Counted from the whole stretch's first letter, positions 5,501 through 50,970 are shown. The stretch: DNA of 63,443 bases, filler included, from Choristocarpus tenellus KU-1152 (GCA_964200185.2; 10 parts of 10 records of this genome joined end to end with filler, not necessarily neighbours in it); one strand, 5' to 3'. The notes: generated by a model from the sequence alone, not told the origin. Numbers and translations are program-made.

Positions 5501-8030
5501 TCATAGATATGACAGGTGGACATGTGTTCGAGAGGCACATAAACAGAAAACGCACACCTTGCAACCTTGAGTTTAATCTGCCTTTGGTGTACGCCAAAAC
5601 AGACACCTGGACACTACGTGCTCACGCCTATCACCCACAAGGAAACAAGCCTCTCCTCAGAGCATACCGTCCGATTCATCACATTTGGTGCTTCATTCCA
5701 TTCTGTTTAACCAAGCCTATTCTCAGAGCACATTGTCCGATCCACCACATTGGGATTAAGTCGTGTATTTAATTGCTCTGGGCCAACCTCTTCCTTTCAC
5801 AAGACCACGAACAATTCTACTCTTCAAGAGCACTCCCTCTGAACTACCACATCACACTTGATCTGTACTTCAGTTCATCTCTTTTTCCAATCAAAGGTAT
5901 ATCAGCAACGGTTTGTGGTGCCCTCTCATTTCTCATTGCCACACTCTTCTTATTTTCTAACATATTATGGATACTCTGTATTACTTGACAGGGTTAGCTA
6001 TACTACAACACAAAAGACAGGGAGCACGAGAGATGAGGATTTTGTACCACAGTCCAATGTACTCCTCTTGCTCCAATAACAATCTTGGTAGGAGTGCTGA
6101 ATACACCTCATCAGGGGTGGGATCCTCTACCCACGCACAGAGTGTTTACCACGTCCACCAACCTCAGACACTGATTGAAGAGGTAGCACAATCCCAGATG
6201 GGCATTTATAAGGTCAGGTAACTAGCACCCCACCGAGCATGTGAGAGCCTCTTGGCCCGACAGGGTCCCTCTGCCCTGTCCGCCAGCTCTGCCGATGGAC
6301 AAGGGCCACTTGTTGGCCACACACCTTGAGAGTGGTAGTGTAGCCACGGGATGCCATCCGACTAATCTCCCTGGACATCCAACAAGAGATACTTGAATTC
6401 TCCCAGGAGGGGGAAGTGTATTTCTCGGCAGTGGTCTCCACCCACTTGATTGGAGACAAGAAATACATTGGGATATATCCATCACCAGCCACGTACAGCA
6501 AAGGACTGAGGACAAAACAGGGAAAAAACGGATTTAAGGACTTTTACCCAAAAGTAGTAGGCTATAACCAGGTGCTGCCCCTGCACTCCACAGCTAACAT
6601 TGATTGTCATAGATTGACTATTGACATACTCCGCTGGTGATCAAGGGGTGCAGCACTAGTGAACAAGTCTAGAATACACTCAAGTACTTTTTCAATGGGA
6701 CTAACATGCTTTGGGACCACCTACTAGTACTAACAAAGCTCAAAGAACGTGTGTAAACAGTACCTGTTTTCCAGTCATCCCGGACAACCTCTTGCAGGCC
6801 TTGCCTGCTTTCCGAAGAACATCTTCCGCAACATGAGCTTGCTGAGAGAGTGTGACGGGAACATGATCCTCCCTCCTCCTAAGGAAGTTCGAGGGGTGGG
6901 GAATCTCACAGGAGTATATATAGAGCCACTTGAGGGATAGAGATATCGAGCAAATCACGGTCAATGCTGGTCTGGAGATTTGTTGCACACAAACAAGTTG
7001 CTATGCCACCCAACTCCCTCTAGTCCACAAGAATCTCAGAGCAACAGAGTCCTAGGAATTTAGGGACCCAAATAGAGACAAGTAAAGACCGCACATCCTT
7101 ACGTTATGAGAGGTCTGACTGTCTTCTTGACGGTCTACAGCACGGCCAGGACTTTGATCGCAACTCCATCTGCCTTGATCTCGCTGGACGTCACCTGAAC
7201 ACTGAGCTTGGCGTTGATTCTGGCAGCGTGTACACTTGCTGTGCGAACTGCCTCGGAAAGGTTGGCAGCGCCGTTAATGGTCTCTACCATGTTCCGAAAA
7301 GCGTTGAGAAGCCAAAGATCGATAGCCCTCTTGGCGCATTTATGGTCATCTCGGTGGTTGACTTTGGACGCTTAGCCGATGGAGGCATTGAGAGCCTCAT
7401 AGTAAGCAGTAAACTTCATCGTGAGGACCTGTGTTGGGGGTGATTGGGCATATTAATAGGGATGTGGGATGTTACAAAGCGGTACGATCGAGGCGACCGA
7501 AGGGACAGGTCAGAAACAAAAAGGGAGCGGGTGAGTCGAGTGAGGTTGCGACACAGAAATATCTGTGTCATACACATGAAAGCAAACGATGGTGCGGAAG
7601 TATTCTATATGGTCTCTGATCCACTCGTCAACCTCCCTGGGAGTGGGGCTGTGGGGATGAAGATCGAAAGGCTTGCGGTCACCTTTTGGAGTAGTGACAT
7701 CAATATCTCTCCGAGGTGAAACACTACAAGGAAATAAAAGGTGGCCATTGGCACGAGGACGGAAGGCAGGGCGTGTAGAACAGTTTCCATAACCGTGGGT
7801 AGGTTGCCGGAAATAGTGCCGGAGACGAAAAGAGGACCAAAAGCCCACATAACCCGTTGGGGTATCTCCACTAGAGCTAGAGGTTTGGATACCAGAGAGT
7901 TGGACACACGTACTATTCGCTCCAACAGTGACGTGGGGTGCGAAGGTCCTCAGATGTCTGGATCAAAGTGAGGTGCGTTACTGCTAGGAGCAACGACAGG
8001 TTTGTCAAAGGAAGGCATATCTCCCCCATA
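2540..8030 (-). mobile_element. Highly degenerate LTR-retrotransposon (Gypsy-like) internal remnants
   Basis: Minus-strand fragments are broken by stops and frameshifts. An integrase-like stretch LIMVDPSSNLVRSTP...ELTTDQGSPF (about 2850-2950) resembles rve 'VD.FSK...SDNGSQF'. Coding-like gag-position fragments lie at about 7100-8020. Boundaries are approximate. Confidence 0.4.
4487..4888 (-). mobile_element. Solo LTR of the Copia family seen at 60233
   Basis: Its reverse complement starts TGTGCAATATAGGCTGGTAATCTATATG, identical to the LTR start after the Copia PPT at 60233. A 5-bp TSD AATAT sits at 4482-4486 and 4889-4893. Confidence 0.85.
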
Positions 8031-8409: not shown

Positions 8410-8479
8410 GGGTCAAAGTATCTGGGGGGGGGAGGGGGGNNNNNNNNNNGAGAGGGGAAATACGATAGAAGGGAAGAGA

Positions 8480-8514
<35 letters not shown>

Positions 8515-8677
8515 AGGTGTACACCAGGGTGTCCATTCGGACCATAAATAACCACCAGGAAGAGTGAACTTTCATTATCCATTCGACAAGTAAGTGCAAT
8601 CAAACCACCCAAAAACCGAGACAAGAAAAAATTGGCCCCAATTGGACAGCTTCCAAACCCCCCAGATACTTTGAGTC
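8410..8677. mobile_element. TIR MITE (G-tract subfamily)
   Basis: Terminal inverted repeats GGGTCAAAGTATCTGGGGG ... CCCCCAGATACTTTGAGTC. The internal sequence is shared with copies at 34396, 37600 and 38955. Confidence 0.8.
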
Positions 8678-9275
8678 AATGCAGGATATATTAGAGGGTA
8701 ATTTGCCTTGTCACAGTTTTTCAGGCTGTAAGAGAGGTTTCGGCGTTTTCCTGACAATTCTCTCTTATATTGAGCAAACTCCCAGTTTTTTCACTAATTG
8801 ATTGAGGGAGTTTCCCAAAAAGTCATGTCTAAAGTTAAGCAAATACAACAACGTAAGGCACAAACCTGCTCGAGACCAGCAGTACAAAGCATAGCAGTCT
8901 CTTGTCTCTCAGTACTGTTACCTTACAGTACGTACACTATATCACATCAAGTTTAGACAACTGCATTCTACAGATGTAACGATGCCCTGCGCAGCGGGAT
9001 CCAGCTGGTCCGTCACACTATACATGGCATAAGTGTCGCGTTTGTACCGGCTGTCTTCATGGTATTTGCGGCGTCATGGACCCCTTTTGGCACCAGCAAA
9101 ATGAAATGCATGTGGAAATTGTGCGTTAGCCCCACCAAGCGCAAGGCTTTGAGTCCTCCAGCTGGTGACAACATGGCATTGAAGCGCCATGATAACAAGA
9201 ACAAGGGCAAGGGCAAGGTGCTGCCAAATAGATCTACGGAGAAAGTCTCTCCCTACAAGCCTTGGGGTGCTGACA

Positions 9276-9900
9276 ATCGTAAAATTTGAGCGTTGCAGAG
9301 GAGGTGGAAGCGTTGACACTCCTCAAGACCTTGATGGGAACTGCGGTTGCTCAAAATTTTGGAATCGATCACAGCACCCTGTACAGTTTGAAGGAGGCAA
9401 CAACCATCATGGAGAAAGTGCAGATGCTGAAACCTGATGGCAAGTCTGTGAGGGGTGCCAAACTTGTTGAGGTGCGTCGTTGCGTGGATTGAAATCTGAA
9501 AGTAGGTTGATTGTGATTATGACTGAATTGTCTTTCTGCACTGTCTGCAGATGAGGATTATGATTTAATTTTTTGAAATTTCGCGTGCATTTCTGTTGTA
9601 CTGTAATGTCTATACGGTGTATTGTAGAATCACGAGTGGCCATGTTGTTAATGAGGATCTCTCTAATGCTCTTGACACTCTGCACCTTAAACCCAGCGGA
9701 AAGCCGTCTCAGGCTTCCATCAATGCAGCAAGAGTGTGGATCGTTGTGAAAGACAACGATGAAGTGGCCAATGTGATACTAGAGGACATGAAAGACCAGC
9801 TGCTCCAGAAATTCTTGTACCAGTCAGGCAATGAAAGCTCGGGTGACGAGGATGGCAATGGGTTTATGGGAGGGTGCAGCGCATCGGGGGCCGTGAGGAA
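9276..9900 (+). pseudogene. pogo/Tigger (CENP-B-like) transposase remnant
   Basis: RKILSVAEEVEALTLLKTLMGTAVAQNFGIDHSTLYSLKE...KSVRGAKLVE matches the N-terminal psq/CENP-B HTH of pogo/Tigger transposases. An acidic fragment follows at 9630-9900. No DDE core is visible. Confidence 0.6.
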
Positions 9901-10499
9901 AGGAGCAGCCTTTTCTGTGTTATCGATTCTCTCAAGTAGCTGACGAGTTTGCAAGATTAGAAACAACCATCAAAGAGTGCAGCATGAACGATGTTTCGAA
10001 TAATCTCCGGAAAGCAAAGATGGCTTGGCTCAGCACAATCTGGGCAAGGGAAATCACACATGTGGACATTCGAGATTTTTTTGGCAGTCGCATTTTTTTT
10101 TATCAGCGATTAAGTTCTTTTACTCAGTGCATGCGATGGGAGGTGCATGGTGGTGCAGCTACATTTGATCTACGGTGGTGTTTTTGATACTGTACCGTAT
10201 AGTATCCTTGTAGAGTGCAATTGAATACGTAGGGCCGGGCAACTGCGAGTCATCTGTCCAGCCATCCAACAGCTTGCATATGCTTTTCGAGGGCTGGAAA
10301 AAGTTTGTCCTTCCTTCAATCTGGACAAACACGGCAAAGAACATGTCCTCGTGTTCAATGTTGCTTTGAAAGTTATCGTTAATAGTATAGGTGGTGCCTT
10401 CGAGAAGTATGGGGTTCACCCATCCCACAACATCACACTGAAGGAGAGAAGGCACTTGTTATGTCTAGCAACCTACCCTCGAACATGAAGGTATCAAGA

Positions 10500-10700
10500 A
10501 AAAAAAACTACAATATTTATTGTGGGTAATAATAACAATATTGATGAAAATAAAGCAATAATGATAATAACAATGACAATAATGATAATAACAATGACAA
10601 TAATGATAATATCATAACAAAAGCAATAATAATGATGGCAATAATAATGGCGAATATAATAATGGATATTCAAAACAACGGTAACACAAATAATGATAAT
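10500..10700. repeat. AAT/GAT-rich low-complexity microsatellite region
   Basis: Runs of AAT/AAC/GAT triplets, including a duplicated ATAATGATAATAACAATGACA unit. Confidence 0.8.
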
Positions 10701-10847
10701 GACAGGTGCCCAGTGGCAGGGTGCAGGAGGCAAAATGTCGATACCAGATATGCCCGCACCTGCCCCAGGGCAGGGAGACAGGTACGACAGCACACGCCAA
10801 TGGTGAAACGCCTGCACCAACTATGCAAGGGGATGGGCATCCCTTGC

Positions 10848-10947
10848 NNNNNNNNNNNNNNNNNNNNNNNNNNNNNNNNNNNNNNNNNNNNTTAATTAAT
10901 TAANNNNNNNNNNNNNNNNNNNNNNNNNNNNNNNNNNNNNNNNNNNN
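10848..10947. other. Artificial contig-joining linker (N44-TTAATTAATTAA-N44)
   Basis: The same 100-bp spacer, with stops in all six frames, recurs at 17625-17724, 21029-21128, 24090-24189, 37500-37599, 50739-50838, 53790-53889, 57291-57390 and 60811-60910. Confidence 0.97.
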
Positions 10948-11245
10948 CCCCCCCCCAGATACTTTAGGTTCATCTCTGTCTCTCACTATGTCAAAAGTGG
11001 GGAATGGGGCAAAGGAAGCTGAGTGCTGCGATTTTGGAGTTGAGGCGGAAGTGCTAGTTGGGAATTGTGAAACCCTAAGTTCGTTGGCTACTTCATACTT
11101 TAACACTAGACTCCCTCTGAGATTTTCTCTATGGGAGTTGCATCCAGATACAAGTAAAGCAGTTCTGATTTTCCACTCTGCTATTCCACACCGTCGAACT
11201 GTGAAAAAAAAAACACATTCTTGAATGCCGTTCCCTTCTGCAAAG

Positions 11246-11421
11246 ACCTTTGAGCCCGAAAGAGTAGCAGCCTTCGAGCTAGAAAAGATTGCTTTGGACG
11301 AAGAGAGGAGGAAGCAGGAGGAGGAGGAGAAACCTAAGGTTAGTGGATGAGTCCCAAATTTTCAGAGTCGCCTCCATCAACGCACTTGTCGGCTAATCTC
11401 TGCAATGGAATGTGTGTGTTA

Positions 11422-11456
<35 letters not shown>

Positions 11457-14400
11457 ATATTTTGTGATTTTTTGTCCCTGAGCTGAATGTTGGCCTCCAC
11501 ATAAATCCTCCACACATGACTCACCCTATGGCAGAAACGCCCAAAAAGTATTATAATCCCCGGTCCCTCAAGTTCACGTTTCCATGGCTCATTCTTTCAT
11601 TAATTTCCTTGTGTTGCGGGTAGGAGAGTGGCATGGGTAGTGCCGCTGCCATCGTCAGTGTGGATCCTGATCTTCACGGCGATCTATCTTTCACAGAAGA
11701 AGAATTGGACAAGTTTGACTATCTTGGCATGGAGGCAGAGATAGGGGAAGGGGAGTCGGGCAGTCCACACAATAGAGACCCTGGAATGGCTGTTATTAAT
11801 TTCCTTCTCCAATGCGGACAAAGACGATCATGTGAGTACCTTGCTGTATCGTGTTGCTCTTGCCATGGTTGCGAAATGTGACCAATTTCTGGACAGCCTT
11901 CAACTGTGCATCAAAGCTGTCCGACCTCCCCATATTTTCTCATCTTGGGCAAGACAACAAGAGTATTATGCCATTTTCACCTCCTCTTTCTTCTCACCTT
12001 TGCTCCTCAGTTCTTCCCCCTCCTACCTCCGCCCTTGATGCATTCCATTGCCTAAGATGCTGAGCGCTATACCACAAATTGGATATTATTTGGTGGTTGC
12101 CAGGAGCAGACAACTTTGTTTGATATGTGCCATTGAGGGTTATCTTTTGTGCTGCTGCAACACGAGTTCTAGTTCAGAGAACACATCTTCATGCCTCATC
12201 CCCCCTTTAGGTAAGGACAAGGCCAGAGAGGCCCCATCCTCACCCCGGCTTCCACAAGACAAGTTACCGCCCAGATCTGCTCCAAAGCCTGCTCTTGGAA
12301 GCTATATCTGCCATAATTTCGTTCAAAAGGTGGATCAGGCTGCCATCCCATCTCCAACAGCAAGTGCTTTGACGAAGAGAATAGAGGAGTCGACATTGTC
12401 TCTATCCGCCACTTGCCACTCGAATACTGGCATTGATGCCTCTTCAGAGGCTGCTGATGGAGCAGCTACATCACTAACTGCTGAGAAGGTATGGCGCACC
12501 AGTGAGCTTCGCAGATTCACTGAGATTGAGATCACAGAGGATGGAATGGAGAAGGGAGAACGGGATATAGAGGGCGAAGAAAGAGCCGAGTTGGCCAATG
12601 GCTTCCTTGTGTATGGACGAACCCTAGGGTCATCAGTCAGTATCCTTGATGAGCGCGATGCAGTTGCAAGGGGGGTACGAACAACCTCCTCCTCCAAAGG
12701 GATAGCTTCTGATCAGGCTCGTCTCAAGGCTCAGGATCCCTTCCAGTGGATGGGCAGGCTCCAAGCGTGTGTCATGTCCCTTGGTGAGTTGAGTGATGAG
12801 GCTGCTGCCTCTTTGCACAGTGTCAACGAGACAAAAGGGACACCTAAGAGTCCTGTCAAAGGATCACCCGTGGACAAGTCAGTTGACAAGGGAGACAGAG
12901 GAAAAATGGAAGAAAGAAGAGGGTTTCCAGAGGAGGAGATGGATTGGGCAGCTACTGAAGATGTGCATGGGACATTGTCCATGTTTAAGTATGATGGTGA
13001 GATTACAAAGACCTCAGACAGAGAGACATTTTGGAGAGAGGGAGCAAGGGGTGGGGAGATGTTGGACTCGACAATAAATGGTAACAATTTGACATTTTCA
13101 AACTCAGGTGATGACAAAGACAATGACATTACTGGGAGTGACATGGACTGGGGTAATGCTGTAAGGCGAAAAAATTCTGAGATTTCAGTGTCAGAGAGAG
13201 TCCCTGGAGAGGATGGTGCAGGAGTGTCAACAGTGAGGAAAAAGCCCGACAGAGTGGCTGGGCCACTTCTTGAACAGGATTTATCTGTTAGGGAGGTCAA
13301 GGTAGCTCATGTATGATATCAGCTGATTATTGACCTGAAGTTAAATTTGCTAGCTACTGCCACTTAAGAATTCAGTTGTCTCTGAACCTAGTACCAAGTA
13401 AATTGCTGGTTCTTGAATCCCTTCTGGTACTAGATTGCATAGTAAAAGACTTATGTATCCCCTATTGGGAATAGAAACAGAGTAGTATGGCTGCAAGGTG
13501 TTAGTTACATCACAGGTATTCACAGCTTTTTTCCTTATGCAGCATGCTGCTACATTTGTGCTGATTCTTCGAGAACTAACTTACATTCTCATTGCTCTAC
13601 TACCATATCGATCTTCCATCTCTCTTCTGGTCCCTGGAACTTATTGTGGATATCTATTCGGGTATCAATTCTAAGCCCCCAGTTTCAAGTGTGGAGTACA
13701 ATGACTCTTCGCCTGTGGCGCCCCCTCGGCTCAATTCAGTGGGGCCTTGCCCCATGCCTGGCGGAAGAGGTGGCAGAGGTGGTCGAGGCAGCAATTGGCT
13801 CCTGCCACGAAATGCAATCACTAAGGTGATCCCTCGCATAAACTCCACACTGCCCACTGTTTCAAAGCCTGACGTTGCCGGTGTGGCTCAAGACAAAGAT
13901 GGCACCTTGCAGGTGAGCTGGGGGCTCTTGGGCAGGCCTCTATCACAGCTGGTGAAGGAAAGGGTTCAATGACTGTTGGGAAGAACGATAGACTCCTTTT
14001 CAAGGCAGTTACTGTGAATCTAACTTTGCCTTCACAATCCATTAATTTGCATTGCACAAAGGTAGAGCAGAAAAAACGGAAATATTATAGAAACTTGTGC
14101 CTTGTTACTCTAGTCAAGAAACTAACACATACCCTAGGATTACTCGAGATACTGCATCTGAAAAAACACAAATCGAATTTGTATTAGCAGTGGTATTTCA
14201 CCGAGTAACTGCACACACAACCTGATCCATATTGGAAGGTGTCCCACAAAACAATAGTAGACAAGGCCCTTCAAGGCAAGTCCTCATTTCCACTCCGGAG
14301 TAGAGCTCTTTACTTCACCCGGAATTAATGATTCCGAACAAATCCCTCCAGTGAAGGCCGCACCACACTCTAATCATACTACCAAATTGGCTGTAGCTTG

Positions 14401-36435: not shown

Positions 36436-38184
36436 CCCCTCAGACGCTGTTCCCTGTCTGGTCACCGAACATTGACACCTTGTGACAGTACCTATAGTCC
36501 TGCACCATAGTGCATTGTAAGTTGGTGTCTTTTTCACACCGTCTTTTTTCTGACATGTTGTGACACACACAGACATACACCAGACAAGCAACAGCATGGG
36601 AATGCAACTGCAGGGACTGAGAGCACAATTTGAAACATAGTGTGTCCATCCCTTTCCTTTACCACTCCTCATATTAGGCAAGTGCTTCAGAACCACTTCA
36701 ACCTTTCACAATGAACCCTTCTTGGAACATTAGAAGATAGTGGCAGAGAAATCACCTTATTACATCATGTCTTGGTGTACCCCTCCACCCCCACCCCCCC
36801 TGAACTGATCAGAATTCCCCTTGCGATCCCCAGCTCCCCACTCAGGTACAACGGTAACTAAATACACCATCAGGAGGAGCATATACACACCATCCACCAG
36901 CAAATGAACCTGAAACACCTTACTAGCTTAATAGGCTACACTCCTCATTATCTCACAGAATGAAGTGGGGCAACCTCTTGGGCAGTCTAGATGAGATGAA
37001 TACTCTCTTTGTTCTTCTCATCCACCCCTTCCATTAAGCCCACCTAGCAGTACACAATCTCGCTCACATCCACACGCCATCCCCCCACCCCTATCCCCTG
37101 CTTCTCCCACACCTGGGACTTACAGGCAGACAAGATGCTCCCGCCTCAGCAGAATACCAAAATCCATTCCATCCTCTAGAATCCTCACTAAGACTACACC
37201 AAATCCCTAGCCACCCCAAATACCTCTTCTCTTTCCACAGACAAAAGGTGATAAGAAAATAACTCTCTTGATATCAATAACAAAAACACAACAAAAAGTT
37301 TCAATTTTCCAAAAGGCAAACAAAGGACTCTTGAGTTCACTTGCCCATTCCCAACATATAGTCCAGAGTCCCATCGACTAGAACATCATTCCTTCCCCGC
37401 CCTGGTTCTCCCTCAACAATCTCCCAACACACTACAAATGCCCCTCCCCTCCCCTCCCCTCCCCTCCCCCCACCACATCTAGGCACCTATTGACCTCCCN
37501 NNNNNNNNNNNNNNNNNNNNNNNNNNNNNNNNNNNNNNNNNNNTTAATTAATTAANNNNNNNNNNNNNNNNNNNNNNNNNNNNNNNNNNNNNNNNNNNNG
37601 TGATTTGGTTCCATACGTTGGATTGATAATGAAAGTGCACTTTTCCTGGTTTTGGTCCAAATGGACACTCTGGTGTAGACTCCTCCCCCCCCCCAGATAC
37701 TGTGGGTCATACGGTTGAAAGAAAGGTAATGCACCAGAACTTGCATGCATGAGGTACGCCATCCAAGAATTGTACCATTGATCCTTATATCTGATTATGT
37801 CGTTTGATGCACGATCCAAGCAAAATGATATATATTTGTGTATGTGTAATATTTGTGTGTGCATACATTTATCCAATCTACACGATTTTTATATATTGTA
37901 GGTCTGAATTCTCCATGTAGAATACAAATACTTTTCAACCCTACCCATGTATTGCTGATAACATTGAATTGTGATCCCACATTGCCTTGGAGTGAGTTCA
38001 CATGATGGCTCCAGTTATTAGCAGGAACCCAATGGCACAAAACAATTTGAGAAGAAACCAAATCCGTTCATGCATAGTGTGTAGGTCGCATGCAATGTTG
38101 TGCACGGAAAGGCAGGGGTCTCTGCTCCCTGCTGCTCTCTGCTGACTAGATTGAACATGGACGACAACCTTGTAAGTCACTCAC

Positions 38185-41100
38185 CCCATCATAAACATCT
38201 TCTGCGACAAGTTGCATTTGTCCCTGTCCTTCAATTATTCCATCCTTGAAGCCTCCCTCATACTGCAGCACAAGTGCCTGTTGTAGAATCAGGGGAAATA
38301 TTGGACGTAGGATTACGTCAAGAGTCACTTTCGTCAATTACTCCTAAAATTATAATTGTACCCCTTGTCCAGCAGTGCAAGTCAACGGCGAGTAGTTCAC
38401 CTTCTTGAAAATTCCTCACAATTATTTATCACAAAAACCTCAAAGATGGCTTACCAAAAGGATCACCACTGCTCCAGTATATAGATGTCAAATCAACACA
38501 TAATGGGCACCTAGAAATCCCTCGGCAGCAACATCTATAATAATTACGGTTTTGCCCTGACATTGGAACCGTTTTTCCTTTGAGCAGAACCAATACTATT
38601 ACATTGTTCACATCTGCTACAAAATGATACCTATGGGACAACCCACCTACTCCTATGCAGCTTAAGTATGATCAATTACGACAAAGCATGTCTAGAATAG
38701 TCAGCGTCCAGTCACAATCGATCCCAATCCACTACAATGAAGAAAAGGTTTCCGACAAACCTTAGGTATACCGTCAGGACTGGTACAACTTGCTCATGCA
38801 GAAAGAGAGATAAGCCTTCCAAACATCGATTTGTATTTTTTGTACATATTCCTTGGAGGTATGGTAGACTAAGCTAGTACCATGTTCTGAAATTCTATCA
38901 TCTTGAATACAGTATGTATGAAGGACATATTTCCCTACTTATGAACTGCACACAGGGTCAAAGTATCTAGGGGGGGGGGTGGCGGCTGTCCATTTGGGGT
39001 CAATTTTTTCATGTCGTGATTTTTGGGTGATTTGGTTGCATCGTCGAATGGATAATGTAGATATACTTTTCCTGATTTTGTCCCAAATGGACACCCTGGT
39101 GTAGACTCCTCCCCCCCCCCCCCCTCAAGTGTTTCCGCCGCTGTAGATATACTTTATNNNNNNNNNNTTTGTTTCTTCGTCGAAAGGATAATGTAGATTT
39201 TTTTTTCCTTTTTTTTGCCCAAAGGGGCCCCCCGGGGTGGCCCCCCCCCCCCCCCCCCCTCTAGATACTTTGGGTCATGCAATTCATTCCGAGGCATTTG
39301 GGTTGACAATTGATTGATGCCTCTAAAGGATATGTATGTGTAAGTGGAGGTAGAAGCTATCCACTAACCAAGACTCGCATAGCATGCACCAATACTCTAC
39401 AATCCAACAACACACATTTGTTTCGGGATTAATTATAATTGGAGTGAAATTATCTTAGAGGGTACGAGTTTCGCCCTGTTTGTCCATTTGGGGCTTTGTT
39501 TCCCACTTTTTTTTTACATTTTGCTACTCCGAAATGGTTCAGAGGAGGTGAAAATGTGTAAGTTATGAAAAGGTGTGCCTGGAACAAGGATATTGACACC
39601 TCCTCAAACAAAACATTACATCAAAATTGCAACATTGGATTTTGGCTCCCAAATGGACGCGGCTCTACCCTCTAAGATACTTTGACTCATTGATTATATT
39701 GACAAACCTTTGGCACATAGGTATGTATAGGGGTGCATGGCATACTACAAGTAGTAACTGTTCCAGTTTCTCCAGTACTGAATTTCCTTCAGAGAGCGGA
39801 CTCTAATTATGGGTGGCAAACCTATCCAACAAACTGTGGAAGAGGCTTAGCAGTTTGAGACACCACAAAAAGTAATCACATACGGGAAACGTGGAGTTTT
39901 CAATACACAAAATGGATCCCTAAGTGTGCATGTAAAAGATTAAAGAACCTACTATGTACTCATAGACATACAATGCAGTACAACCACCTACACACACACC
40001 TCTGGCTTGTCATAGACCACCAGGTACCCTTTCCATTGTGGGACCATATCCCCTGGGGCAGCACTGATGGGCCTCACAGCGTATCCTGAGAATGGACCCA
40101 GCTCAGTGTCTATGGATGAAACTCCATGGAGCGCCAGTGCCTCTCGGTATAGGGGAGTAAGGCTATCCAGATATGACTGCACCTTAGCATTTCCCACCTC
40201 CTATATAAGAGCAGGGATTGAGGTTCAGTTGGTGATCCATACCAAGGTGAAGGATTCTTGTTGTTGAATTGATACTGATGTCGAAATATTTGGGCGAATT
40301 GTCTGAGCTTTCACCACCCAGTACAAAAGAAAGGGGGTCTGCTTAAACACTTTCGAGTTGCTTCTCTAGTATATGGACCTAAATATCTAGGTCTATTGAT
40401 GTGTACTCCAAACTTAGGTTGAGTCACTTAATCAAATGTAGAGCTCCATGTGGTAGTAATTGCTCCTAAGGGACCCCTTTCACCAAATTTACGGTTAGAA
40501 TATACCTTTGAGTATTCCTGAAATAACATGAACTCTTTGCGAAATAGCGAAGAGTGTAATCGTGGCATACCTTTGGAATGCTACAGGTAAGGCACACAAA
40601 ATGGGTAGGAAAGTTATGTCAGTTATTGCTTTATGGTGGTACAGCATCATGTAAGATAGAAGACACAGAAAAATACACTTGGGGACATTGTGGGGCATTG
40701 AATATGGCATTCAATTCATGACACATGTAGCTAGTAATGCTCACCTTTTTCGGCATAGGAAGCTCAATTAAATTCTGAGTGCCAAATAATCAGCATATAT
40801 AACTGACTACCTGAGAGAGCTGGGTGTATCAGCATAGTTCCAACCAACACGATCGCATAATTCACTCATAAACACGGCTAACATATCAACTCTAAACAAG
40901 ACTCAGCACGGGACACTTGTTTCCTGTTGCACATACCTTTATGGATTTTTTCATGATGAAGTCTGCGCTCTCGTTAAGATATTCCTGCACAACATTCATT
41001 GCATCTAACTCCTGCTTAATACGATTCGCGGCATCCGAGAACACTTGACGGAATTCCTGTGGTGGCTGATACGCTGGATCTGACTCTGGGGTACCCTGAC

Positions 41101-44100
41101 CTTGAATGATGGCATCACAGCGCCGAACAGAGTCTGAGTACAAGAGCAGATACTCATTTGCCTCCCTTAGGGTGAGAAGAAGTCATAATCGAAAAAAATA
41201 CATTCATTTATTGTCAATGTTGTGGAGAGCTCTAGCAGATAGGAGAAAACATACTTTTTAATTCAACAACTAATAGGGAAATTCTGTCCCTCCCTAGCAT
41301 CAATACTTCACATGCAGCATTAGCCTAGTTATGCAATGTATGAGCAAGTACAGATTTCAAGGAGCAGGTGATAGTTCCACCAGTCAGTCCAGTTGCGCTT
41401 TGTTTGCAGGAATTGATCCCCTCCGTACCCTGTGCTCGAGGCTAGAAAAAAGGCAACTGACCTGAGGTTGGCCTGCAAAATTCGTAGACTTATGTTGTTC
41501 AGTAGCATTGGAAATCTTTCCACCGGGAGGGGGCGGACCTGTTTGAAGCGGTGTGGAGTCAGTTAGTGCACAGGAAGATAGCTTCCACACACGTCACTGG
41601 AACAAAGCTATTCTGTATCAATAGCCAAGAATTGTGTACAGGGTAAGATATATTCTCAATCTGAGGTAATCCATATCCTTCGAAACTGTTTCATTTTGAT
41701 CACTCTCTACTGCTATGCCTGCCAACTGAACTCCTATCACAGAGGATGGTCCCACCTGTACACTCTTTCTAGCCATGCTCCATGAAGCCACAAAGCTTCA
41801 GCTGAGTTGCTATTTTTGGCTCTTAATCAATGTAATAGATATATGAAAACCTGCACCCCCACTATCAGCATCAAAATATATAGCCCTCTGAGTATAACTT
41901 ACACTTACATGGGAATTTACCCGCTGTCACATATGCATAAATACACAAACTACATATACACAAAATTGCCGGTGTATATGTCAATATTGATCCTGCAATG
42001 TTTGGTTTTTGGTTAATCAGAGAGGAGGAGGGAGAGAGACAAAGAGGAATGGGTAGAAGTACCATGTCGCAACATTATCTGGGAGTTCCTTCTACCACAC
42101 AATAGGGCTCAAGGTCCCTTTAGGGTTGAACATAGTCAGAGACCAACTCAGGTTAAATTTACTCGTCTAGCAAAAGCCAAAAGGGGGATTACCCAGACAG
42201 AACCACATTTACCTGGAAGCCAACAATAGCCAGCTGCTCGTTGTCATTGACTGTTGGTTGGAATGCTTTAATGCACGCGAGAGCCTCTTCTGGAGATTCA
42301 CATCCCATCTTATCGACGACAGTGTTGCCTGCTACACGCTTTGATAAGCGCACAGAGATCTGCGACTCCTCTTGTTCCTCAAATTCTCCAAAGTGAAAAC
42401 TCTTGCTTATCTGTGGACACCCAAGTGAGCAAGAAAACAACAAGTTATATATGGTTTCTAAAAACACAAGTCAACCCTAACCTGATCCAATTTAAGAAAA
42501 GTCGAGAAATTTGTCCAAATCTAGTCTTAGCAACGTCGCATTATTCTATGACATAGAATGTTTACTAGACAGCAGTTTAGTCTGCCCATTGCATGTGCTC
42601 AACAAGGTGTCCCCCCTGAAGATAACTTCGCCAAAATAGCAGCTTCAGAAGATCATACACTTCACCAGCTTAGAATTATATCATTTTTTACTGAGGCCAT
42701 TGTCCATAACATGAACACTGAGCCAAAATATCTTAGAGGGTAGAGCCGCGTCTAATTGGGAGCCAAAATCCAATGTTGTAATTTCGGTGTAATTTCGGCT
42801 ATCGTTCTTGTTAGGAAGTGTCAATATCCTTGTTCCGTACACACCTTTTCAAAACGTATACATATTACCTCCTCCGAAATATTTTGGAGTAGGAAAATGT
42901 CATAAAAAACCCCGTGGGAAGCCAAGCCTCAAATGGACAAACAGGGTAAACTTGTACCCTCTAAGATACTTTCACTCACTCTAGGGTGCCACCAGACTAA
43001 GAATTGGCATTCGTAAGGTACTCAGGTGCATATGGTACAGCATGGTCCAAACATATACTCCAACACTTCCAAGAAGCACCTAGAGTGCTTCAACAGGAAA
43101 CAAAAGGATAGATGACCGAATAGAAAGAATTTCCCACCTTGAAAAATCCCAAGTTGATGCTTGCTTTTACCTTAACCTCCCACTCTTCCTTTTGGTACAC
43201 AGAATCTGAGTCGTATATGAAATCTATCTCGAGAATGGCTCCATACAGGATCTTATGGATGTAGTAGCCCCCGAGCATTCTCAGCACCTCATTGGAGTTA
43301 GTCAACTGCTTCGCATCTCTGGTAAGGTCGGCATTATACACTGATCAATTCGACGACAAAAGATAGCACAAGAACGGTGGGGATGTTTGTTGGTACAAAA
43401 AAAAAGAGTCGAGGGAATAAGCAAAGGCATCCGTGCCTAAAAAAATTGAGTGCAAAAGCGTGCTTCAGCACGCATTTGGATTTTGACACCCAAATGGACG
43501 CGGCTCTACCCCTCTGAGATAAATTTGTCGCAGTGCAACCATGCGATAAGAGTGGCATTGAGCGTCCATCATGTGGCTGATATCGAGGACAGAGGCGTCT
43601 CACCTGTTTTACTCTTCAATACAACATTTTTTCGGTATCTTAGTATAAATTTTCGCCCACTCGAGTTGTTCACCTGTAACAATTGGAATAATGAGTTCAA
43701 GGGTACAAGATGAGAAGATAATGGAGGTGGGGGGAGAACTGCAGATCAAAAATCTGTCAAAAAAACGTAGGTGAAATGATAAGGCAAACTAGTCTGGACA
43801 ACTTGTCTGTGAAGCTCTACACATTGTAGGGGCCGGTCGCAAGATGTGCTCCAGATAGACTTGAGATCGTGATGACATCCAGCCCAAGGATGAGATTAAA
43901 AATTTTCCCGGACATTCATTTCTGGTTTGGATCACAACGTGTGCCTCATGCATACCTCTTCGAAGCTTCCCGTTGCCTCTCCTTCAATAATCAACACTTT
44001 GGCTGACGCTTCAAAGGAAATGTCTAAGCTTTGCAATACGTCCCTCGAGCTTTGTATCAAGGAGAAGCTCGCTCTGGCCGAAGACTGCTGCTCCTCATGC

Positions 44101-44243
44101 ACCCCGTATTCACTGTCATTATCCACAGCAAAAACTCTGAGAGTGCTAGACCCGTTCAACGCAAACCCATCACCGAGGACAGGCTGATCCTTCTCTCCCG
44201 GAAATGGGAAAGTAGACGGAATGAACAGATCTGTAGATGCCAT
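38185..44243 (-). CDS. Stonustoxin-like MACPF/CDC pore-forming protein with C-terminal MORN-like repeats, paralog A (3' end missing)
   Basis: Exons 44243-43956, 43673-43604, 43340-43138, 42410-42213, 41538-41462, 41165-40937, 40774-40745, 40200-40000 and 38277-38185 are all AG/GT-bounded and join to 1389 nt (463 aa) without stops. Motifs: PVLGDGF; LDISFEASAKVLIIEGEATGSF (TMH1-like); LRMLGGYYIHKILYGAILEIDF (MACPF signature-like); EVKVKASINLGFFKISKSFHF (TMH2-like); VGFQVRPLP; QYEGGFKDGIIEGQGQMQLVAEDVYDG (MORN-like). Confidence 0.8.
38955..39276. mobile_element. TIR MITE (G-tract subfamily) in an intron of paralog A
   Basis: Termini GGGTCAAAGTATCTAGGGG ... CCCTCTAGATACTTTGGGTC, with an internal 10-N gap. 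Confidence 0.8.
39442..39688. mobile_element. TIR MITE (AGAGGG subfamily) in an intron of paralog A
   Basis: Termini GAGTGAAATTATCTTAGAGGG ... CCCTCTAAGATACTTTGACTC, flanked by ATTG on both sides. Homologous to 32299 and 42720. Confidence 0.85.
42720..42977. mobile_element. TIR MITE (AGAGGG subfamily, opposite orientation) in an intron of paralog A
   Basis: Termini GAGCCAAAATATCTTAGAGGG ... CCCTCTAAGATACTTTCACTC, with a 3-bp TSD ACT at 42717-42719 and 42978-42980. Confidence 0.85.
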
Positions 44244-46115
44244 CTATCCCAATATTATTGTGGTGCGATGCCACCTGCAGAAAATACAATATATGGCGGA
44301 CATGTCGTCCGATTGAGCATCTGCTACCCAAACCAGGATCAGAATGTGAAGTCTTTTATGATCAAGATGGTTTAGCGTGTTGCCCACTTTGTCAAGTCCA
44401 CGCTACATTGTGCAATCGACAATCTACGTACCACATATCTCGATAGATCCTGCAACCCCAAAAAGGATCGAGGGTGTGAACAACGATATTCAAGTGATAT
44501 CAGTTAAACGCAGCATCGAGAGAGTTTGTCAACAGGGTGCTGCATAGCCCAACCCACAACATAAGTCCTGTCTATAACAACGACAGCAACTATATATGGT
44601 AGGGGATTCACTGTATCTGCATCATTACGCAAACACGCCAGGCACTCTTGCATGATAGCCGAACCCCCCCACCTCAAATACCCACCCTGCTTGGTCCAAA
44701 GATCGAGGTTTATCCAGATTGTCGTAGAAGCGACTCCCTTTTACCCCCTGCTACAGTGGATGCTTCTGGAACCTGATACTCTTCCCATCCAGTTTAGTGA
44801 AGAGAGGGATAGTAGTAGTAAGATTCACATTCAACAAGGAGCATTGAATATCTATACTTGGTAGCAAATAATTTAGTTCTGATGATCAAATTTTTTTTAG
44901 GAAGGTCACTCACGCTCGAGACAAACAGTTAAACCGGTACGTTTGATATATAATTTTCATTGGTTTCCCCTCTGACACATCTGCAAAATGTCAGAGGGCA
45001 TAATATTAATAATATATGGAGAACCTTCCTTACCATTGGGTTTTGTCTACCACCTATATCAATTCTATCTTAACAGAGGAGTAAGAAATAATGGAAGATA
45101 AACAACGATTGAGAAGATTCTCCCTCTGTTCTATGAAATATCAATTTGAATATAAGAAATTGATAAGTTCAGAATAGTCAAATGTGGTGATTGTCGAGTT
45201 ATGGTAAAGGGTTAAAACTATTAGACATATCTCAAAAGTATCTATAACATCTATACCCTTGTTCTTTGGAAGTCTCGATCCACCAAAAATATTAATCATT
45301 GGAACTTGTCATGTCCTACTTACTACCTAGTAGTTTGCAAGGTTTTTACGAGACCCATATTTCAACCAACAATTTTGATTGCGACTTGTCAATTCAACCT
45401 ATAAACTCGACAATATCTGTAAATGAAAATGCAAGTAACCAAAATCTGAACAAAACCTTGCATGTCCTTCACAAGAACGGAAATTTCCACATCATCTGCT
45501 TACCTTGTCCAAATCACCAACTCATATCAACACTCAACCCTTCCTTCCTCAGCAGGCCCAAAACAGAGTAGTGTGCAATCGGGGTCACCTTCACATCCAC
45601 CAAGTGCACAAAACAGGTACAAATAGAAGAGCAGTTCACATGTTTTGATATCTTTTGTCATTCGTTGGTCATCATGAACGTTATGAGCGAAAGGTTGTCT
45701 ATGAACTCCTTCCTCACTATATCAACAACACAGGGGTGCGCGGGCAGACCTCTCGAAGCCTTTATCGAGCCTCCAATAAAATACACATGTTGTTGACACT
45801 ACACCGACAACAGGATGTCGATGTTCGCATGCCAAACAGCAAATACTCAGACCGACCAGACATGATATCGGATCTTTCACCATTGTCCACGCCCTATACC
45901 CCACTCTCATTTGAACCATTAAATCAATCCCAATGTCCAACTGAAACCAACGCCTATATCGCACCCAACACCTCCGAGCCTATTTTGGTGACCACCTTCG
46001 GTACGCAGTCTCGGTTAAAGTATGTTGCTTGAGTTTTGGGGACTTCAATGACTCAACACGTTCATTCATTCCCGATGTGAAAACCCTCGCACACTGGTAA
46101 ACCAAGCAACAGATC

Positions 46116-49100
46116 ATGTCGGGAGAGCTCTATTACCCACAGGTTCTTGGCGAGCCAACCGTGATGGACAAGACCAACCTTGGGGATGGTTTCTCAGTTC
46201 ATTCCCAGGGACAGGTGCAGAAGGCGCTTATCATTGACATGGGTGATGATGGAAAGCTAACACAAGAGGACTTCCACTACGAGAACCAGGTTACAGGGCA
46301 GAGTTCGTATGCTGTCATCACGAGCTCTGCAGACCGGAGTGAGGCCATGGGCATCAGTGGGGCGGTAAAGCTCAAGTACAAGGTCTTCACAGGCGAAGCT
46401 GCAGGATCGTTCGATAGCAAAGAAGAAACTAGCACGAATTCCATTTCTCTCTTGTACAGGAAGAGTGTCACTTTGAAAACTCTAGCAGGTGAGTGCCGTA
46501 TCTAATTAGATCGCTGTACTTTATCGTGATGTGTTATCTCCATAACAAACACACCTGTTGCGAGTGGGATGCATTGACATCATAGCCAAACCATAGACAA
46601 GAATCGATCGTGTCCTTTGTGTTCCAGTACTGACACCCATCAACTCTGGTCCATTCATTGCAGTGCCTGAGAACATGGAAGGAGTCACAATTTCGAAAGA
46701 AGCAGCCGCGATGAGCGATGCGACGCTTTTGAAGACGCTTGGTGGCTATTATGTCTCCAAGATTATGTCAGTGTGCCTCCTTTCTGGGGGGGTGTTGATT
46801 GGACATTTTGACAAGAACCAACTCTAGCTGTGGGTCTGCAATGTAGGACAGGATTTTCAATATACTACGGCCACATTGTATACCCTTTGTAGTCAGCAAG
46901 AAGAGATGCCTATTTCTCCTATGGCAAGGCTTTTGCATGTCCTACCTTAGGCACTGACATACCCTTTTCCCCTTCTATGCTATGATGAACTTGCACCACC
47001 AACCCTAACTTGGGTCGTTTAAAGATTAATCTCATGGTACAGTTTTGGTCCACGTAAGATATCTTGACCCTTAGTAGAGTACAGACTTGGGCTCGGTGTT
47101 AAACCAAACTCACTCTCCTTTGTAAGTTAGTGTAACCTCACAACCACTTAATTAATAGATTTGTGGGTACTTCTTCTCTACTTACTACTATGCTCTTCTA
47201 CCCACATATATATCTGAAATCTTTTTGGTGGTGTATTTTCCCCCTTGGTTGAATCCCCCTCCCTTCACTGCCCTCTTCTCCTCTATTGACCTGAACAAGC
47301 TCTCCTCCTCTCTGCCCTCTATTCTTCCTCATTCATTCGAGTCCTCTGTACCCTGCACTTCCTCCCTTCTCTTCTTGTCATTTCCTACATTAACATTGTA
47401 GAGGGTGGCAACCATACACAGGTAGTGCATTGATTCTGGTAGAGTGGTTCATACCTCCCTTAGCAATTCTTCAAGGAGCAGTCGTAGTCCCCACCACTTC
47501 AGCATTGCGAAGTGATATATAATGTGTACCTCCGATCACTTCCCTACCCTCCATGGTCCTTTCTTTTGCCTTGGTCTTCCTCCTGCCACCCTTTTGAAAA
47601 GTCCCACATTTCTTGCAGGTTAAAAGACTGACCTTGTACAGAGCAGAATACAATTTATTGACTTGGTGAATACGTGGACTTACTAGATGGGATGATAGTT
47701 GCTGCTTCTAAAACTTGGGGTATCTCATACAGCAAGAATGTGAAACATCTTAGTTCATCTCTCTTGTACTGTCACATCTTTACGACCCCAAATGTCAGGT
47801 ACGGAGCAGCGCTTGAAATAGACTTTACCCTTACCACCTCAGAAACTACTGTCACCAATGATATTAAAGCCAACGCCAAGGTAGCACTGGAGACTGCCAT
47901 GCTTGAAGGCAGTGCTGAGGTTGACGTGGCAATTGATGATTCAGGGAGAACTGCCAATTTCTCTGTGAGCTCCACGATGCGTGTTGCTGGGAGTAATGCT
48001 GTAGCTGCTCTAAACGTGACAGACATGCTGAGTGCTAGAGAAGCAATCGATGCATTCAACCCTAAGGCCGATGACGAAGATCTAGCAGTCGTTGGCTTCC
48101 AGGTTCGGTCACTGCCCATCACCATGTTCCGCCAACTGGCCTCCACCAACTTTGAGGCCCGGAGGTGAGTTTGAGGAGCTTCAACAACTACTTCCTCCCC
48201 TGTATCTTCTTCCTCGCAGAGGGATCATTTTTTTCACCCCACACACTGTAAACAAACTTGAGGCTTATGTGTATGTAAAATTTGTGTGTGTGTGTCACCG
48301 AATGGAGTCAATCCTACATAATGTAACCGCACACTGGTACTTAAGTTTACGCATGTTGGTAGACTCGAACTGGGAGCACCAGTTTAGTAGTCCCATTTGG
48401 GGGTTCGGTGTCATTGTCATCAGATGTATAGATCTTCACGGTATAATGCAAGCTCTAGGACGTTCTGCAGATACTTGAGTATATGCAAGTACAGTTGTTT
48501 TTGAAATAATCCAAACATCCAATGTAAATTGAATATTCTATTCTCCTGTCAATCAACCAATACTAGCATGTACAATTCGCAGGTATGAGGAGAACGTGAA
48601 CGAGGTAGCAGAGCTGTACTCACAAGTTCAGTCAATCAAAGCTCTTAGTAAGTCTGCGGTGGAAATATTTGGCAATGTTGGTGGCGGGGACCCAGCCAGG
48701 CCATGGAAGAACAGGTGAATTGGAAACATTCCCAAGAGAACAGTTCTACCAACTGACATTGTACGATAAAATTCCTTCACGCCATTACTGTGACAAACAC
48801 TTACGGAGTTTGATGGGTATGACAATATTCTCAATTTTTTCCGCAAATAGACAAAAACGGGTGCAGGGTGGTTTCATGCAACACTATGTGATCGAAATTC
48901 CACTCAATCACATCAGCGAAACCTGCCCCTGACCAAAGCTTCCTCCTGTCAGTCCTGTTGATAGTTCAGTGGGAAGGTGGACTATTCTATAACTAGACAA
49001 ACAGTATTTGTAACACAAGTGGGGGAGGGATGTAAACTAGACTGGATATACAACTACTCTATAACAATACGTTGAGATAAGCATATACCTGTATTTTCTA

Positions 49101-50680
49101 GTGGGGGACACAGACCTGCCTGTCCTTGTCCATGTACACTTGTCATGCACTAGACCCAATTCCGTCCACTGACCTCACTTCTACATGTACCACACCAGAG
49201 ACAGCAAAAGATTAGTACTACCCTACCACAACTACCCACCGAGATTGACACTGAACTATTCTACTGAAATTAGCTCATCCTCTCGATATCAGGAGGTATT
49301 CCTTCTCTGCAACTTTGTAGGCTTTAAGATCACATCTCAGTGACACACAGTTTGAAGACCCATATATATAAACAGCACATACTAGTATATATATAACAAT
49401 GTCATTTTGAGCACGAAGTGTAATGGTGTCTTTCGGACTTGCTTCTTCCCTCTCCCCAGGTTCATCAGGGCTGCTGAGGCAGTGATTGCAAAGACGAACG
49501 ACTATGATTTTATCGTAACATATCTCCAGAAGGATGTCGAGGCTATCACGGAAGAGAGCATCATGGTTCGTGCTTTAGGGGTCTTTGTCTTGATGGTATT
49601 CGGCCTGATAATGTGTTGTGCAGTACCATAAACGAGTGGGCAAGCTAAATCATTCAAAACCCTCATACATGTTGCAATACTCCATTAAAATTGGATCATG
49701 GAATTGAAATAGAGAGATGGCGAAGTGGTGATACGGCATGGTTGCAGAGAAACCGTAGACATCAATATCCAAGTATGTTTAGATTTTACCATCAGTATTA
49801 TGCCTCCTACTACTGTACTTACTAACACACCAATTGTTTTTACTGTAAATCCGAGTTTTTCGTAAGACAATGCAGCCTTGGATAAAACTCGAGCCCCCCT
49901 GACATGGCTGGTAGTGACGTAGTTGAGTCAATGTCCCCTAAGAGTATAGGACTTTGGTTGTCCCTTCCCTTTCCCTATTCAGACGTGGTTGACAGAACCC
50001 CGGTTCCAAAATGAGGCAGGAGAGGAGGCCATCAACAACCTTGGCAACCTGGTTCGTGAGGTGAGTAGAGTCTTCAGTTTGTTCAGCACGAGTTGACTGT
50101 CATGTGTGTGTTGCAGGTAACACCATGATTGTGGAGCAGAAGGGATAGTCACAGTAGCTTCTTTTCTTTTATACTTCGACAAATGCATACCAATGACCCA
50201 TCCTTACATGGCAATTATCACTACATTTGATCTCCACGCCCCTCTACTTGGCACTCAATTTTCTTCTTTGCAGGTGGATGGCCTCATCGGCAAGGCATCG
50301 GTGGACCTTCCCCTTGGGGCCTACGATGGTTATGCCTTGAGGGGTGATGACGGCTCACTGATCCCTGAGTACAGGGGGATTCTGGTGAGGTGTAGGGACT
50401 CAATGTAACCAGTTTGAAGTCTTATGCCCAAAGTGATGGTTTGAGCATTATGTGTGTGCTCATGAAATGATTGCTCATTCCATCACAGCAAACTATTCCA
50501 AACTTGGCCTATCCTGTGTTTCTTTCGATGAACAATATACTCAATGCATGATTTCTGACAATGTTTTGGCAGGTATACTATGATGCAGTGGACACTATCA
50601 AATCACTTGACGGCCTGTTTAAGAACGGACTATTCATTGAGGGTACGGTAGTGTATGAGAATGGTGACGTGTACAATGGG
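46116..50680 (+). CDS. Stonustoxin-like MACPF/CDC pore-forming protein with C-terminal MORN-like repeats, paralog B (3' end missing)
   Basis: Exons 46116-46488, 46664-46766, 47799-48164, 48583-48714, 49460-49565, 49983-50060, 50274-50384 and 50573-50680 join in compatible phases to 1377 nt (459 aa) without stops. Motifs: TNLGDGF; MGISGAVKLKYKVFTGEAAGSF; LKTLGGYYVSKIMYGAALEIDF; IKANAKVALETAMLEGSAEVDVAI; VGFQVRSLP; GLFKNGLFIEGTVVYENGDVYNG (MORN-like). Confidence 0.8.
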
Positions 50681-50970
50681 GTGAGTGTGAGTGTTGTTAG
50701 TGATTTGTATGCACCTGGGGGTGAACACATAATCACGTNNNNNNNNNNNNNNNNNNNNNNNNNNNNNNNNNNNNNNNNNNNNTTAATTAATTAANNNNNN
50801 NNNNNNNNNNNNNNNNNNNNNNNNNNNNNNNNNNNNNNGGTGAAAAACGGACGCCGACACCCCCCCCTCCAAGATACTTTGACCCATGGGATTACAGAGA
50901 TAAGGCGGGTATGACGAGGAAAATACAGCAACTGATGAAATGCTCTCTACACAATGCACTGAGAGCTCAC

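Follow-up and report, generated by a model that had tools for sequence, protein, structure and literature searches.

In a window of 63,443 nucleotides of DNA from Choristocarpus tenellus KU-1152 (GCA_964200185.2), which consists of ten parts of ten records of this genome joined end to end with filler, we have analysed a pair of genes, called A and B in the present work, that lie on a single piece of 13,139 bp (window positions 37600-50738, the reverse complement of CAXNAD020001574.1). We consider, with a probability of roughly 0.7, that A and B are diverged duplicates of a gene for a cytosolic protein that combines an N-terminal MACPF/CDC-type domain with C-terminal MORN repeats, the pore-forming mechanism that we propose for it being drawn by analogy. 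An earlier note on this DNA had described the two genes as an intact head-to-head pair of stonustoxin-like MACPF/CDC paralogs from an alga, and the host is indeed a brown alga.

Genes A (minus strand) and B (plus strand) are arranged head to head, and their start codons were found exactly where the earlier note had put them, at 44243 on the minus strand and 46116 on the plus strand, with 1872 bp between; each follows an in-frame stop codon, TAG at -3 for gene A and TAA at -18 for gene B. The N-termini of A, B and P0001, the relative described below, align from the first residue. Comparison of A with B by frame-by-frame blastp shows that the two genes are colinear, with E values of 4e-11 for exon 1, 2e-6 for the RVAG..VGFQ block and 3e-6 (z 11) for the LG.Y.GYA.R block shared by B exon 6 and A exon 7. 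Local alignments exon by exon gave z scores of up to 16.5 against shuffled sequences and 128/370 identities (~35%), with A exon 4 and B exon 3 being 40% identical (z 13). The description of A and B as colinear but strongly diverged paralogs is thus upheld, and all of the motifs listed for them are present in both genes: LGDGF, YRKxVxLK, LGGYYxxKIxYGAxLEIDF, RVAG, A(I/V)VGFQ|VRxLP, SI(K/M) at an exon end, and DVYxG. Four introns are common to A and B in both place and phase (after LK(T/S)xx, after the arginine codon that precedes the middle region, after SI(K/M) and after DVYxG), whereas each of the remaining introns is found in one gene only. Because four introns are shared and the others are private, the gene structures point to an ancient duplication followed by intron turnover.

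The exons were derived from frame-by-frame homology and splice sites and were then read singly. They are given below, where TMH1-like and TMH2-like denote segments at the positions of the first and second transmembrane hairpin (TMH) regions of MACPF/CDC proteins.

Gene B exon 1: 46116..46488, plus strand; ATG, LGDGF, TMH1-like amphipathic segment, ISLLYRKSVTLK; donor GTGAGT
Gene B exon 2: 46664..46766, plus strand; ends LGGYYVSKI, the first half of the MACPF-type signature; AG/GT sites
Gene B exon 3: 47799..48164, plus strand; YGAALEIDF, TMH2-like amphipathic segment, RVAG, AVVGFQVRSLP; matches P0001 residues 154-269
Gene B exon 4: 48583..48714, plus strand; start of the helical (predicted) middle region; AG/GTGAAT sites, phase compatible with exons 3 and 5; colinear with gene A exon 6 and P0001 285-313, junctions predicted from sequence
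Gene B exon 5: 49460..49565, plus strand; middle region, ends ESIM; polypyrimidine tract and CAG acceptor, GTTCGT donor; ends at the same position and in the same phase as gene A exon 6
Gene B exon 5b (tentative): 49983..50060, plus strand; 26 codons, phase 0 to 0; strong acceptor, GTGAGT donor
Gene B exon 6: 50274..50384, plus strand; LG.YDGYALR...YRGIL block, homologue of gene A exon 7; AG/GTGAGG sites
Gene B exon 7: 50573..50680, plus strand; degenerate first MORN-like unit, ends DVYNG; AG/GTGAGT sites; aligns with P0001 residues 477-490, the first MORN repeat there
Gene A exon 1: 43956..44243, minus strand; ATG, LGDGF, TMH1-like segment
Gene A exon 2: 43604..43673, minus strand; ILRYRKNVVLK; the sole 70-nt AG..GT interval that fits X3 contig 19, confirmed by P0002 (both introduced below)
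Gene A exon 3: 43138..43340, minus strand; LGGYYIHKILYGAILEIDF, MACPF-type signature, start of TMH2-like segment; supported by X3 contig 19 and P0002
Gene A exon 4: 42213..42410, minus strand; remainder of TMH2-like segment, RVAG, AIVGFQ; boundaries placed by AG/GTAAAT sites, X3 depth in bins 42190-42589 and frame
Gene A exon 5: 41462..41538, minus strand; VRPLP...; its phase-2 end coincides with the end of gene B exon 3
Gene A exon 6: 40937..41165, minus strand; helical (predicted) middle region, ends KSIK; fits the length of the NCBI partial model
Gene A exon 7: 40000..40200, minus strand; LG.FSGYAVR...WKGYLVVYDKPE block; its end at 40000, taken together with an exon 8 start at 38277, is the only one to yield the 88-aa NCBI model
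Gene A exon 8: 38185..38277, minus strand; first MORN repeat, ends DVYDG, GTGAGT donor

All 16 exons, i.e. eight in each gene if exon 5b is counted, are bounded by GT-AG introns and all of their phases are compatible. Their GC content is 0.44-0.60 (one exon being at 0.34) as compared with 0.40-0.47 for the introns, and the visible coding part amounts to 459 codons in gene B and 453 codons in gene A. Exon 5b is probably an additional exon of gene B, and is proposed tentatively: it has a GC content of 0.55 against 0.42 in its flanking introns and fills a stretch that is present in A and in P0001, but its similarity to gene A is not significant (local alignment against shuffles, z 0.3).

Transcript data were taken from X3, one public run whose library type is not recorded and whose contigs are spliced (RNA-like). 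Contig 21 of this run (1440 nt) joins 46108-46484 of gene B to 47799-48166 with 107 nt between, which correspond to the 103 nt of exon 2 and four ambiguous bases (GCAG fits both sides, 46484-46488); it leaves the genome at 48164-48166, the end of exon 3, and exceeds the visible exons of gene B by at least 55 nt. Contig 19 (1110 nt) joins 44190-43954 of gene A to 43340-43138 with 68 nt between (68-70 nt missing). As 2-4 bases at the junctions fit both sides, the X3 lengths then agree exactly with exons 1-3 of A and B, confirming for these exons the multi-exon structure that had been proposed. In addition, X3 depth in the introns was absent or low, and the overall lengths of the two contigs leave room for the downstream exons of both genes. 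Both A and B are transcribed and spliced in this one library, which is the sole evidence bearing on their co-expression.

The public annotation misses the locus: the NCBI record presents gene A as three nameless fragments (each an 'unnamed protein product, partial'), all on the gene A strand, and has no model for gene B.

NCBI model P0002: window 44120-43186 (record 6619-7553), gene A strand; 130 aa, residues 43-172 of gene A
NCBI partial model 2: window 42269-40174 (record 8470-10565), gene A strand; 130 aa
NCBI partial model 3: window 40170-38185 (record 10569-12554), gene A strand; 88 aa

The gene A exon lengths reproduce these models exactly, at 390, 390 and 264 nt, and the sequence of P0002 spans the gene A junctions of exon 1 with exon 2 and of exon 2 with exon 3.

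Assignment of the N-terminal domain

As the earlier note had proposed, the N-terminal ~265 residues of both A and B very probably form a MACPF/CDC-type domain. We make this assignment, by remote methods, because three such methods agree in both the family and the position, none of them being strong alone. Single-sequence searches of Pfam and the PDB were performed with individual exons and with P0002, and profiles were built from P0001 together with the exons of the window. The signature in A and B, G-G-Y-Y-x6-G-A, is degenerate with respect to the canonical [YWF]-G-[TS]-H-[FY]-x6-G-G. Two amphipathic segments of ~65 and ~55 residues, rich in S/T/A/G/E/K, are found at the TMH1 and TMH2 positions, and their period-2 hydrophobic moment, which describes pattern only, reaches 2.5 in B exon 3 (first ~55 residues) and 2.3 in A exon 3.

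An exhaustive HMMER search with B exon 3 against 1.84 billion cluster representatives returned P0001 as the sole relative (E 7.5e-4), and this is one detectable relative among ~15 billion predicted proteins. In three word-indexed protein searches the matches were confined to P0001 or to P0002 from the window itself (8000 candidates were scored in each, making this a weak negative), and two metagenome scans gave no relative. P0001 is a 731-aa intron-less open reading frame (ORF) at 196-2391 of a 2430-nt JGI contig (3300056957, Ga0530678_009705) with 46% GC, which is probably the transcript of a eukaryote; the final 39 nt past the ORF are A-rich. Exons 1 and 3 of gene B and the first MORN-like unit align to the protein in colinear order, and at the exact place of the A and B signature it carries the near-canonical F-G-T-H-F-x6-G-T. 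When P0001 was compared with Pfam, the MACPF family PF01823 was matched below threshold, with E values of 0.011 for the whole protein and 0.0029 for the N-terminal 330 residues and scores of 16.4-18.2 bits against a gathering cut-off of 21.5.

The family profile was compared with 177,635 PDB sequences, where the top two matches were Toxoplasma PLP1 (E 0.038) and stonustoxin alpha (E 0.059); intermedilysin and stonustoxin beta ranked after these two in this shorter-profile search. With a longer profile, stonustoxin alpha (E 0.02) and PLP1 (E 0.022) were again matched, positions 54-186 corresponding to residues 50-209 of stonustoxin. All of these profile matches are located at the signature and TMH2. 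The third line combines language-model features with structure neighbours: the ESM Atlas model of P0002, which covers half of the domain of gene A, has a predicted local distance difference test score (pLDDT) of 0.70, and its feature neighbours (top score 0.96) belong to MACPF, MACPF_SNTX and Thiol_cytolysin clusters, with 10/10 of the named ones sharing a family or clan. Its structure neighbours were MACPF, CDC or SNTX-like in 8/8 rows, with template modelling (TM) scores of 0.55-0.60 over 104-119 residues; the fold of this superfamily is a bent four-stranded beta-sheet with a helical cluster on either side (TMH1 and TMH2).

The two hairpin-like segments of gene B (exon 1, 46116-46487, and exon 3, 47800-48162), and likewise those of gene A and P0001, may resemble one another. 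When exon fragments were aligned to P0001 by MAFFT, the TMH1-like region was repeatedly laid on the TMH2-like region, and these alignments, with their misplaced fragments, were not used; a tblastn search with P0001 residues 19-104 also matches 47716-47967 (E 6.7e-4). An internal duplication was considered as the source, but BLASTP between the two regions gave no significant match, and the resemblance probably reflects shared composition and alternation instead.

Downstream of this domain, A and B share a layout of a ~120-residue region, a short conserved block and a MORN array. Counting exon by exon, the MACPF-type part of gene B ends at VRSLP near residue 265, and ~120 residues follow before the LG.Y.GYA.R block. 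This middle region is probably helical; in P0001 it is the only part drawn as long helices in the AlphaFold2 model, at a pLDDT of ~45-54 that makes this a hint only. The MORN repeat is a tandem unit of ~23 residues with the consensus Y-x-G-x-[WF]-x2-G-x3-G-x-G. Gene A exon 8 matches Pfam MORN PF02493 as a single unit (E 7.3e-4, 19.7 bits, cut-off 22.5), whereas the MORN-like unit of gene B exon 7 is degenerate and gave no Pfam match. Pfam searches of every exon in the window found nothing else of relevance. P0001 has seven MORN repeats (E 3e-34, 115 bits) that match solved MORN proteins with E values down to 3e-22, and its C-terminal 30 residues beyond the array match nothing. Neither A nor B has a hydrophobic N-terminal stretch, a signal peptide or a transit peptide; for a brown alga, this argues for a cytosolic location.

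Proposed mechanism and alternative readings

By analogy with the C-terminal modules of other MACPF/CDC proteins, the MORN array of A and B would act as a targeting or assembly module at a membrane face exposed to the cytosol, much as stonustoxin finds its target membrane via its C-terminal PRYSPRY domain (PMC8704401). The MACPF domain would then oligomerise on this membrane, reached from the cytosol, and the two amphipathic segments would refold to beta-hairpins, insert and make the pore.

Several results weigh against this reading. With the exons and P0002 there was no Pfam match to PF01823 or PF01289 at E values up to 10, phmmer searches of the PDB with B exons 1 and 3 and with P0002 were blank or gave unrelated proteins, the profile of the N-terminal block gave only chance matches in the PDB, and no sequence-based match to MACPF/CDC reaches a curated or conventional threshold. 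AlphaFold2 models of P0001 1-440 without an alignment (pLDDT 33) and of P0002 with a four-row alignment (pLDDT 34) were unusable, so that the Atlas half-domain model of gene A is the only structural evidence for the fold, a predicted structure in itself, and gene B is linked to MACPF solely via the profile common to both genes and its paralogy with A. Moreover, the signals from Pfam, the PDB profiles and the Atlas overlap partly on the signature region. At the other end of the proteins, both genes are 3'-incomplete and most of the MORN arrays is missing from this contig, because the final exon seen in A and in B stops at a GTGAGT donor within the starting array and close to a contig end; the genes therefore cannot be called intact, as they had been, and run off the contig, which stops 58 bp past B exon 7 (50738) and 585 bp past A exon 8 (37600), with no further exon of gene A in those 585 bp. 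The weakest link of the proposed mechanism is the targeting step, as MORN repeats are not proven lipid binders and are often dimerisation or protein-binding modules in solved cases (PMC7725318). Taken to its end, such doubt leads to an N-terminal domain that is not MACPF/CDC at all, but a lineage-restricted domain fused to MORN repeats, its weak matches being due to chance or composition. The E values that link the family to MACPF all lie between 0.003 and 0.06, the sequences of the window alone give no match, and, by the Atlas's own account, a third of shuffled proteins also obtain 10/10 matches in one family. We regard this reading as improbable, given that three methods with very large libraries (the Pfam hidden Markov model on P0001, the PDB profiles and the Atlas on P0002) arrive at the same superfamily in a colinear manner, that an Atlas first match of 0.96 is reached by only ~1 in 100 shuffled proteins, and that the F-G-T-H-F-x6-G of P0001 falls exactly on the A and B signature.

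If the fold is accepted, A and B might still be MACPF-fold proteins with a non-lytic role in signalling, scaffolding or the regulation of cell death, the MORN array serving protein-protein assembly, as the dimerisation and binding functions just cited would allow. The degenerate signature of both proteins and a probable location in the cytosol, which is atypical of lytic MACPFs, would suit such a role, and uses of the fold other than pore formation are on record (PMC5483515) and have been proposed for several conserved perforin-like proteins. However, both TMH-like segments retain the ~55-65 residues and the polar/apolar alternation expected of membrane hairpins, and stonustoxin is lytic although its signature is just as degenerate and it too lacks a signal peptide; we therefore hold a non-lytic role to be possible but doubtful. 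The further proposal of the earlier note, that A and B make up a single heteromeric pore of the stonustoxin type in which each is an obligate subunit, being co-regulated from a shared divergent promoter and used in algal defence or cell death, appears unlikely. The head-to-head arrangement with 1872 bp between start codons, the presence of both spliced transcripts in X3, and the retention of all core motifs at ~35% identity, which fits long co-retention, agree with it, as does the rank of stonustoxin alpha as a top profile and structure neighbour, since stonustoxin itself works as a heterodimer of two paralogs, alpha and beta (PMC8704401, PMC10566576). On the other hand, inverted tandem duplicates are common and duplicates acting separately would explain the same facts, most MACPF/CDC proteins form homo-oligomers, and the X3 contig depths of the two genes differ (47.5 compared with 7.1, although depth is a poor measure in any case). 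The transcripts of both genes were seen in one RNA-like library, and P0001, alone on a short contig, is uninformative on pairing.

In our preferred reading, a cytosolic MACPF-MORN protein present as two diverged duplicates, the paralogs may act each alone or together. A bolder combination, in which A and B form a stonustoxin-like heteromer that is held by its MORN repeats at the cytosolic face of a membrane and perforates it on a trigger, i.e. a perforin-fold executioner acting from inside the cell, is a long shot. Were it true, the pore might open in the plasma membrane, in an organelle or in a compartment that contains a pathogen, and the pair would be functionally analogous to gasdermin or MLKL, built from a MACPF domain.

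In immunity and venom, large pores are made mainly by MACPF/CDC proteins, which are usually secreted or act from within vesicles. To our knowledge, the effector machinery of cell death and intracellular defence in brown algae is essentially unknown. If A and B form pores, they are a candidate brown-algal effector of either process, and the stonustoxin-like branch would extend beyond the animals with a swapped targeting module; if they do not, they would represent another case of the MACPF fold being reused for a different job.

Intergenic region, assembly gap and repeats

Two further features of the contig bear on the gene models.

Inter-ATG region: 44244..46115, no strand; 1872 bp, with a high-copy repeat at ~44790-45189
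Assembly gap: 39158-39167, no strand; within the 1722-bp intron that separates exons 7 and 8 of gene A

It is possible that the inter-ATG region is a shared divergent promoter of A and B. Coverage in X3 extends over 45390-46134, reaching ~700 bp 5' of the gene B ATG, and contig 20 (45587-46134) is contiguous with the genome; this suggests a long 5' untranslated region of gene B or an upstream start. As this would reach into the inter-ATG region, any shared promoter would be correspondingly shorter. A 125-aa ORF 5' of gene B (45655-46032) has no support for being a gene.

The assembly gap is flanked by two copies of a repeat family with a poly-C end, D1 (39032-39123 and 39168-39259), and it probably exists because of them; a third D1 copy is found at 37606-37697. 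The gap touches no reading frame, barring a hidden exon predicted by neither the paralog nor P0001, because it is intronic and is spliced across by the NCBI partial model, and because gene B, which has no intron at the matching place, has no extra residues opposite it; none are missing from the annotated A model.

A very high-copy interspersed repeat occupies 42720-42978 and 43390-43589 in gene A introns and 44790-45189 between the genes, with an inverted copy at 39474-39700 to which the repeat arms I1-I3 are 83-87% complementary. Its summed contig depth in run X1 is 3e5-1e6 as compared with ~50-60 in single-copy flanks, and Rfam gave no match, the interspersed repeat included. Intron 2 of gene B is present in two versions over 47051-47422 in each of runs X1 and X2: version 1, with a depth of 16.2 in X1, matches the window without a difference, and version 2 differs from it by 42 substitutions and 34 gap letters and is the deeper of the two (45.9). 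The sequenced material may contain a second haplotype or strain. Run X4, from the same study under another organism label, contains two short contigs identical to the window (45327-45490 and 45963-46221, depth ~3), which look like carry-over between samples, or like the same species labelled differently, and not like a conserved relative.

Comparison with known systems

Stonustoxin (PDB 4WVM; Pfam MACPF_SNTX and Stonustoxin_helical) shares several features with A and B. Its domain begins at residue 1, without a signal peptide, and its MACPF/CDC part spans residues 1-265 (PMC8704401), the domain of gene B ending at ~265; the FAT domain that follows, 266-385 (PMC8704401), is equal in size to the ~120-residue region of A and B. 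The signature is similarly degenerate (T-H-V-V-x..Y-G-A; ..ILYGA), stonustoxin too consists of two paralogs, which pair through their MACPF domains as an alpha/beta heterodimer, A and B being neighbours, and stonustoxin alpha was the top PDB match of the longer profile, with an SNTX-like cluster as joint-best structure neighbour (TM 0.60). However, stonustoxin continues as MACPF/CDC - FAT - thioredoxin - PRYSPRY (PMC10566576), whereas A and B begin a MORN array, with no Pfam match to thioredoxin or PRYSPRY in any exon or in P0001. Moreover, A and B are ~35% identical compared with ~50% for the stonustoxin paralogs, their host is a brown alga and not a vertebrate, the scores of generic MACPF and CDC proteins are just as good, and A and B match no Pfam model for the domain. 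A and B are not stonustoxin orthologs, and the label 'stonustoxin-like' given to them previously survives in a weak sense, for the match rank, the N-terminus and the FAT-sized region, and fails for the C-terminal domains and for specificity over other MACPF/CDC proteins.

Two-component systems, such as pleurotolysin A/B, the CDC-like pairs of Bacteroidota (PMC7527733) and complement C6-C9, resemble A and B in having adjacent genes, at least one of which encodes a MACPF/CDC-type domain. A and B differ in being full paralogs of the same architecture, eukaryotic and divergently transcribed, and there is no evidence of mutual need.

Canonical MACPF proteins (PF01823; Toxoplasma PLP1 5OUP, perforin, C8/C9 and the MACPFs of Bacteroidota) have the signature at the same position with a TMH2-like segment after it, most of the structure neighbours of P0002 belong to PF01823 clusters, and P0001 retains the F-G-T-H-F-x6-G-T form. 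A and B differ from them in lying below the Pfam threshold, in lacking a signal peptide and in having MORN repeats where C2, APC-beta, EGF/TSP or lectin domains are found, although the general logic of both is that of a pore domain with a module for targeting at its C-terminal side. Among MORN proteins (MORN1, junctophilins and radial spoke proteins; PF02493), the arrays in the window are distinguished by being cut after the first unit, but A exon 8 and the degenerate B exon 7 fit the repeat. We know of no MORN protein with a MACPF/CDC domain, and in the literature searched there was no paper with MACPF and MORN repeats in one protein; the combination of the two is a new domain architecture and a new lineage within a known superfamily.

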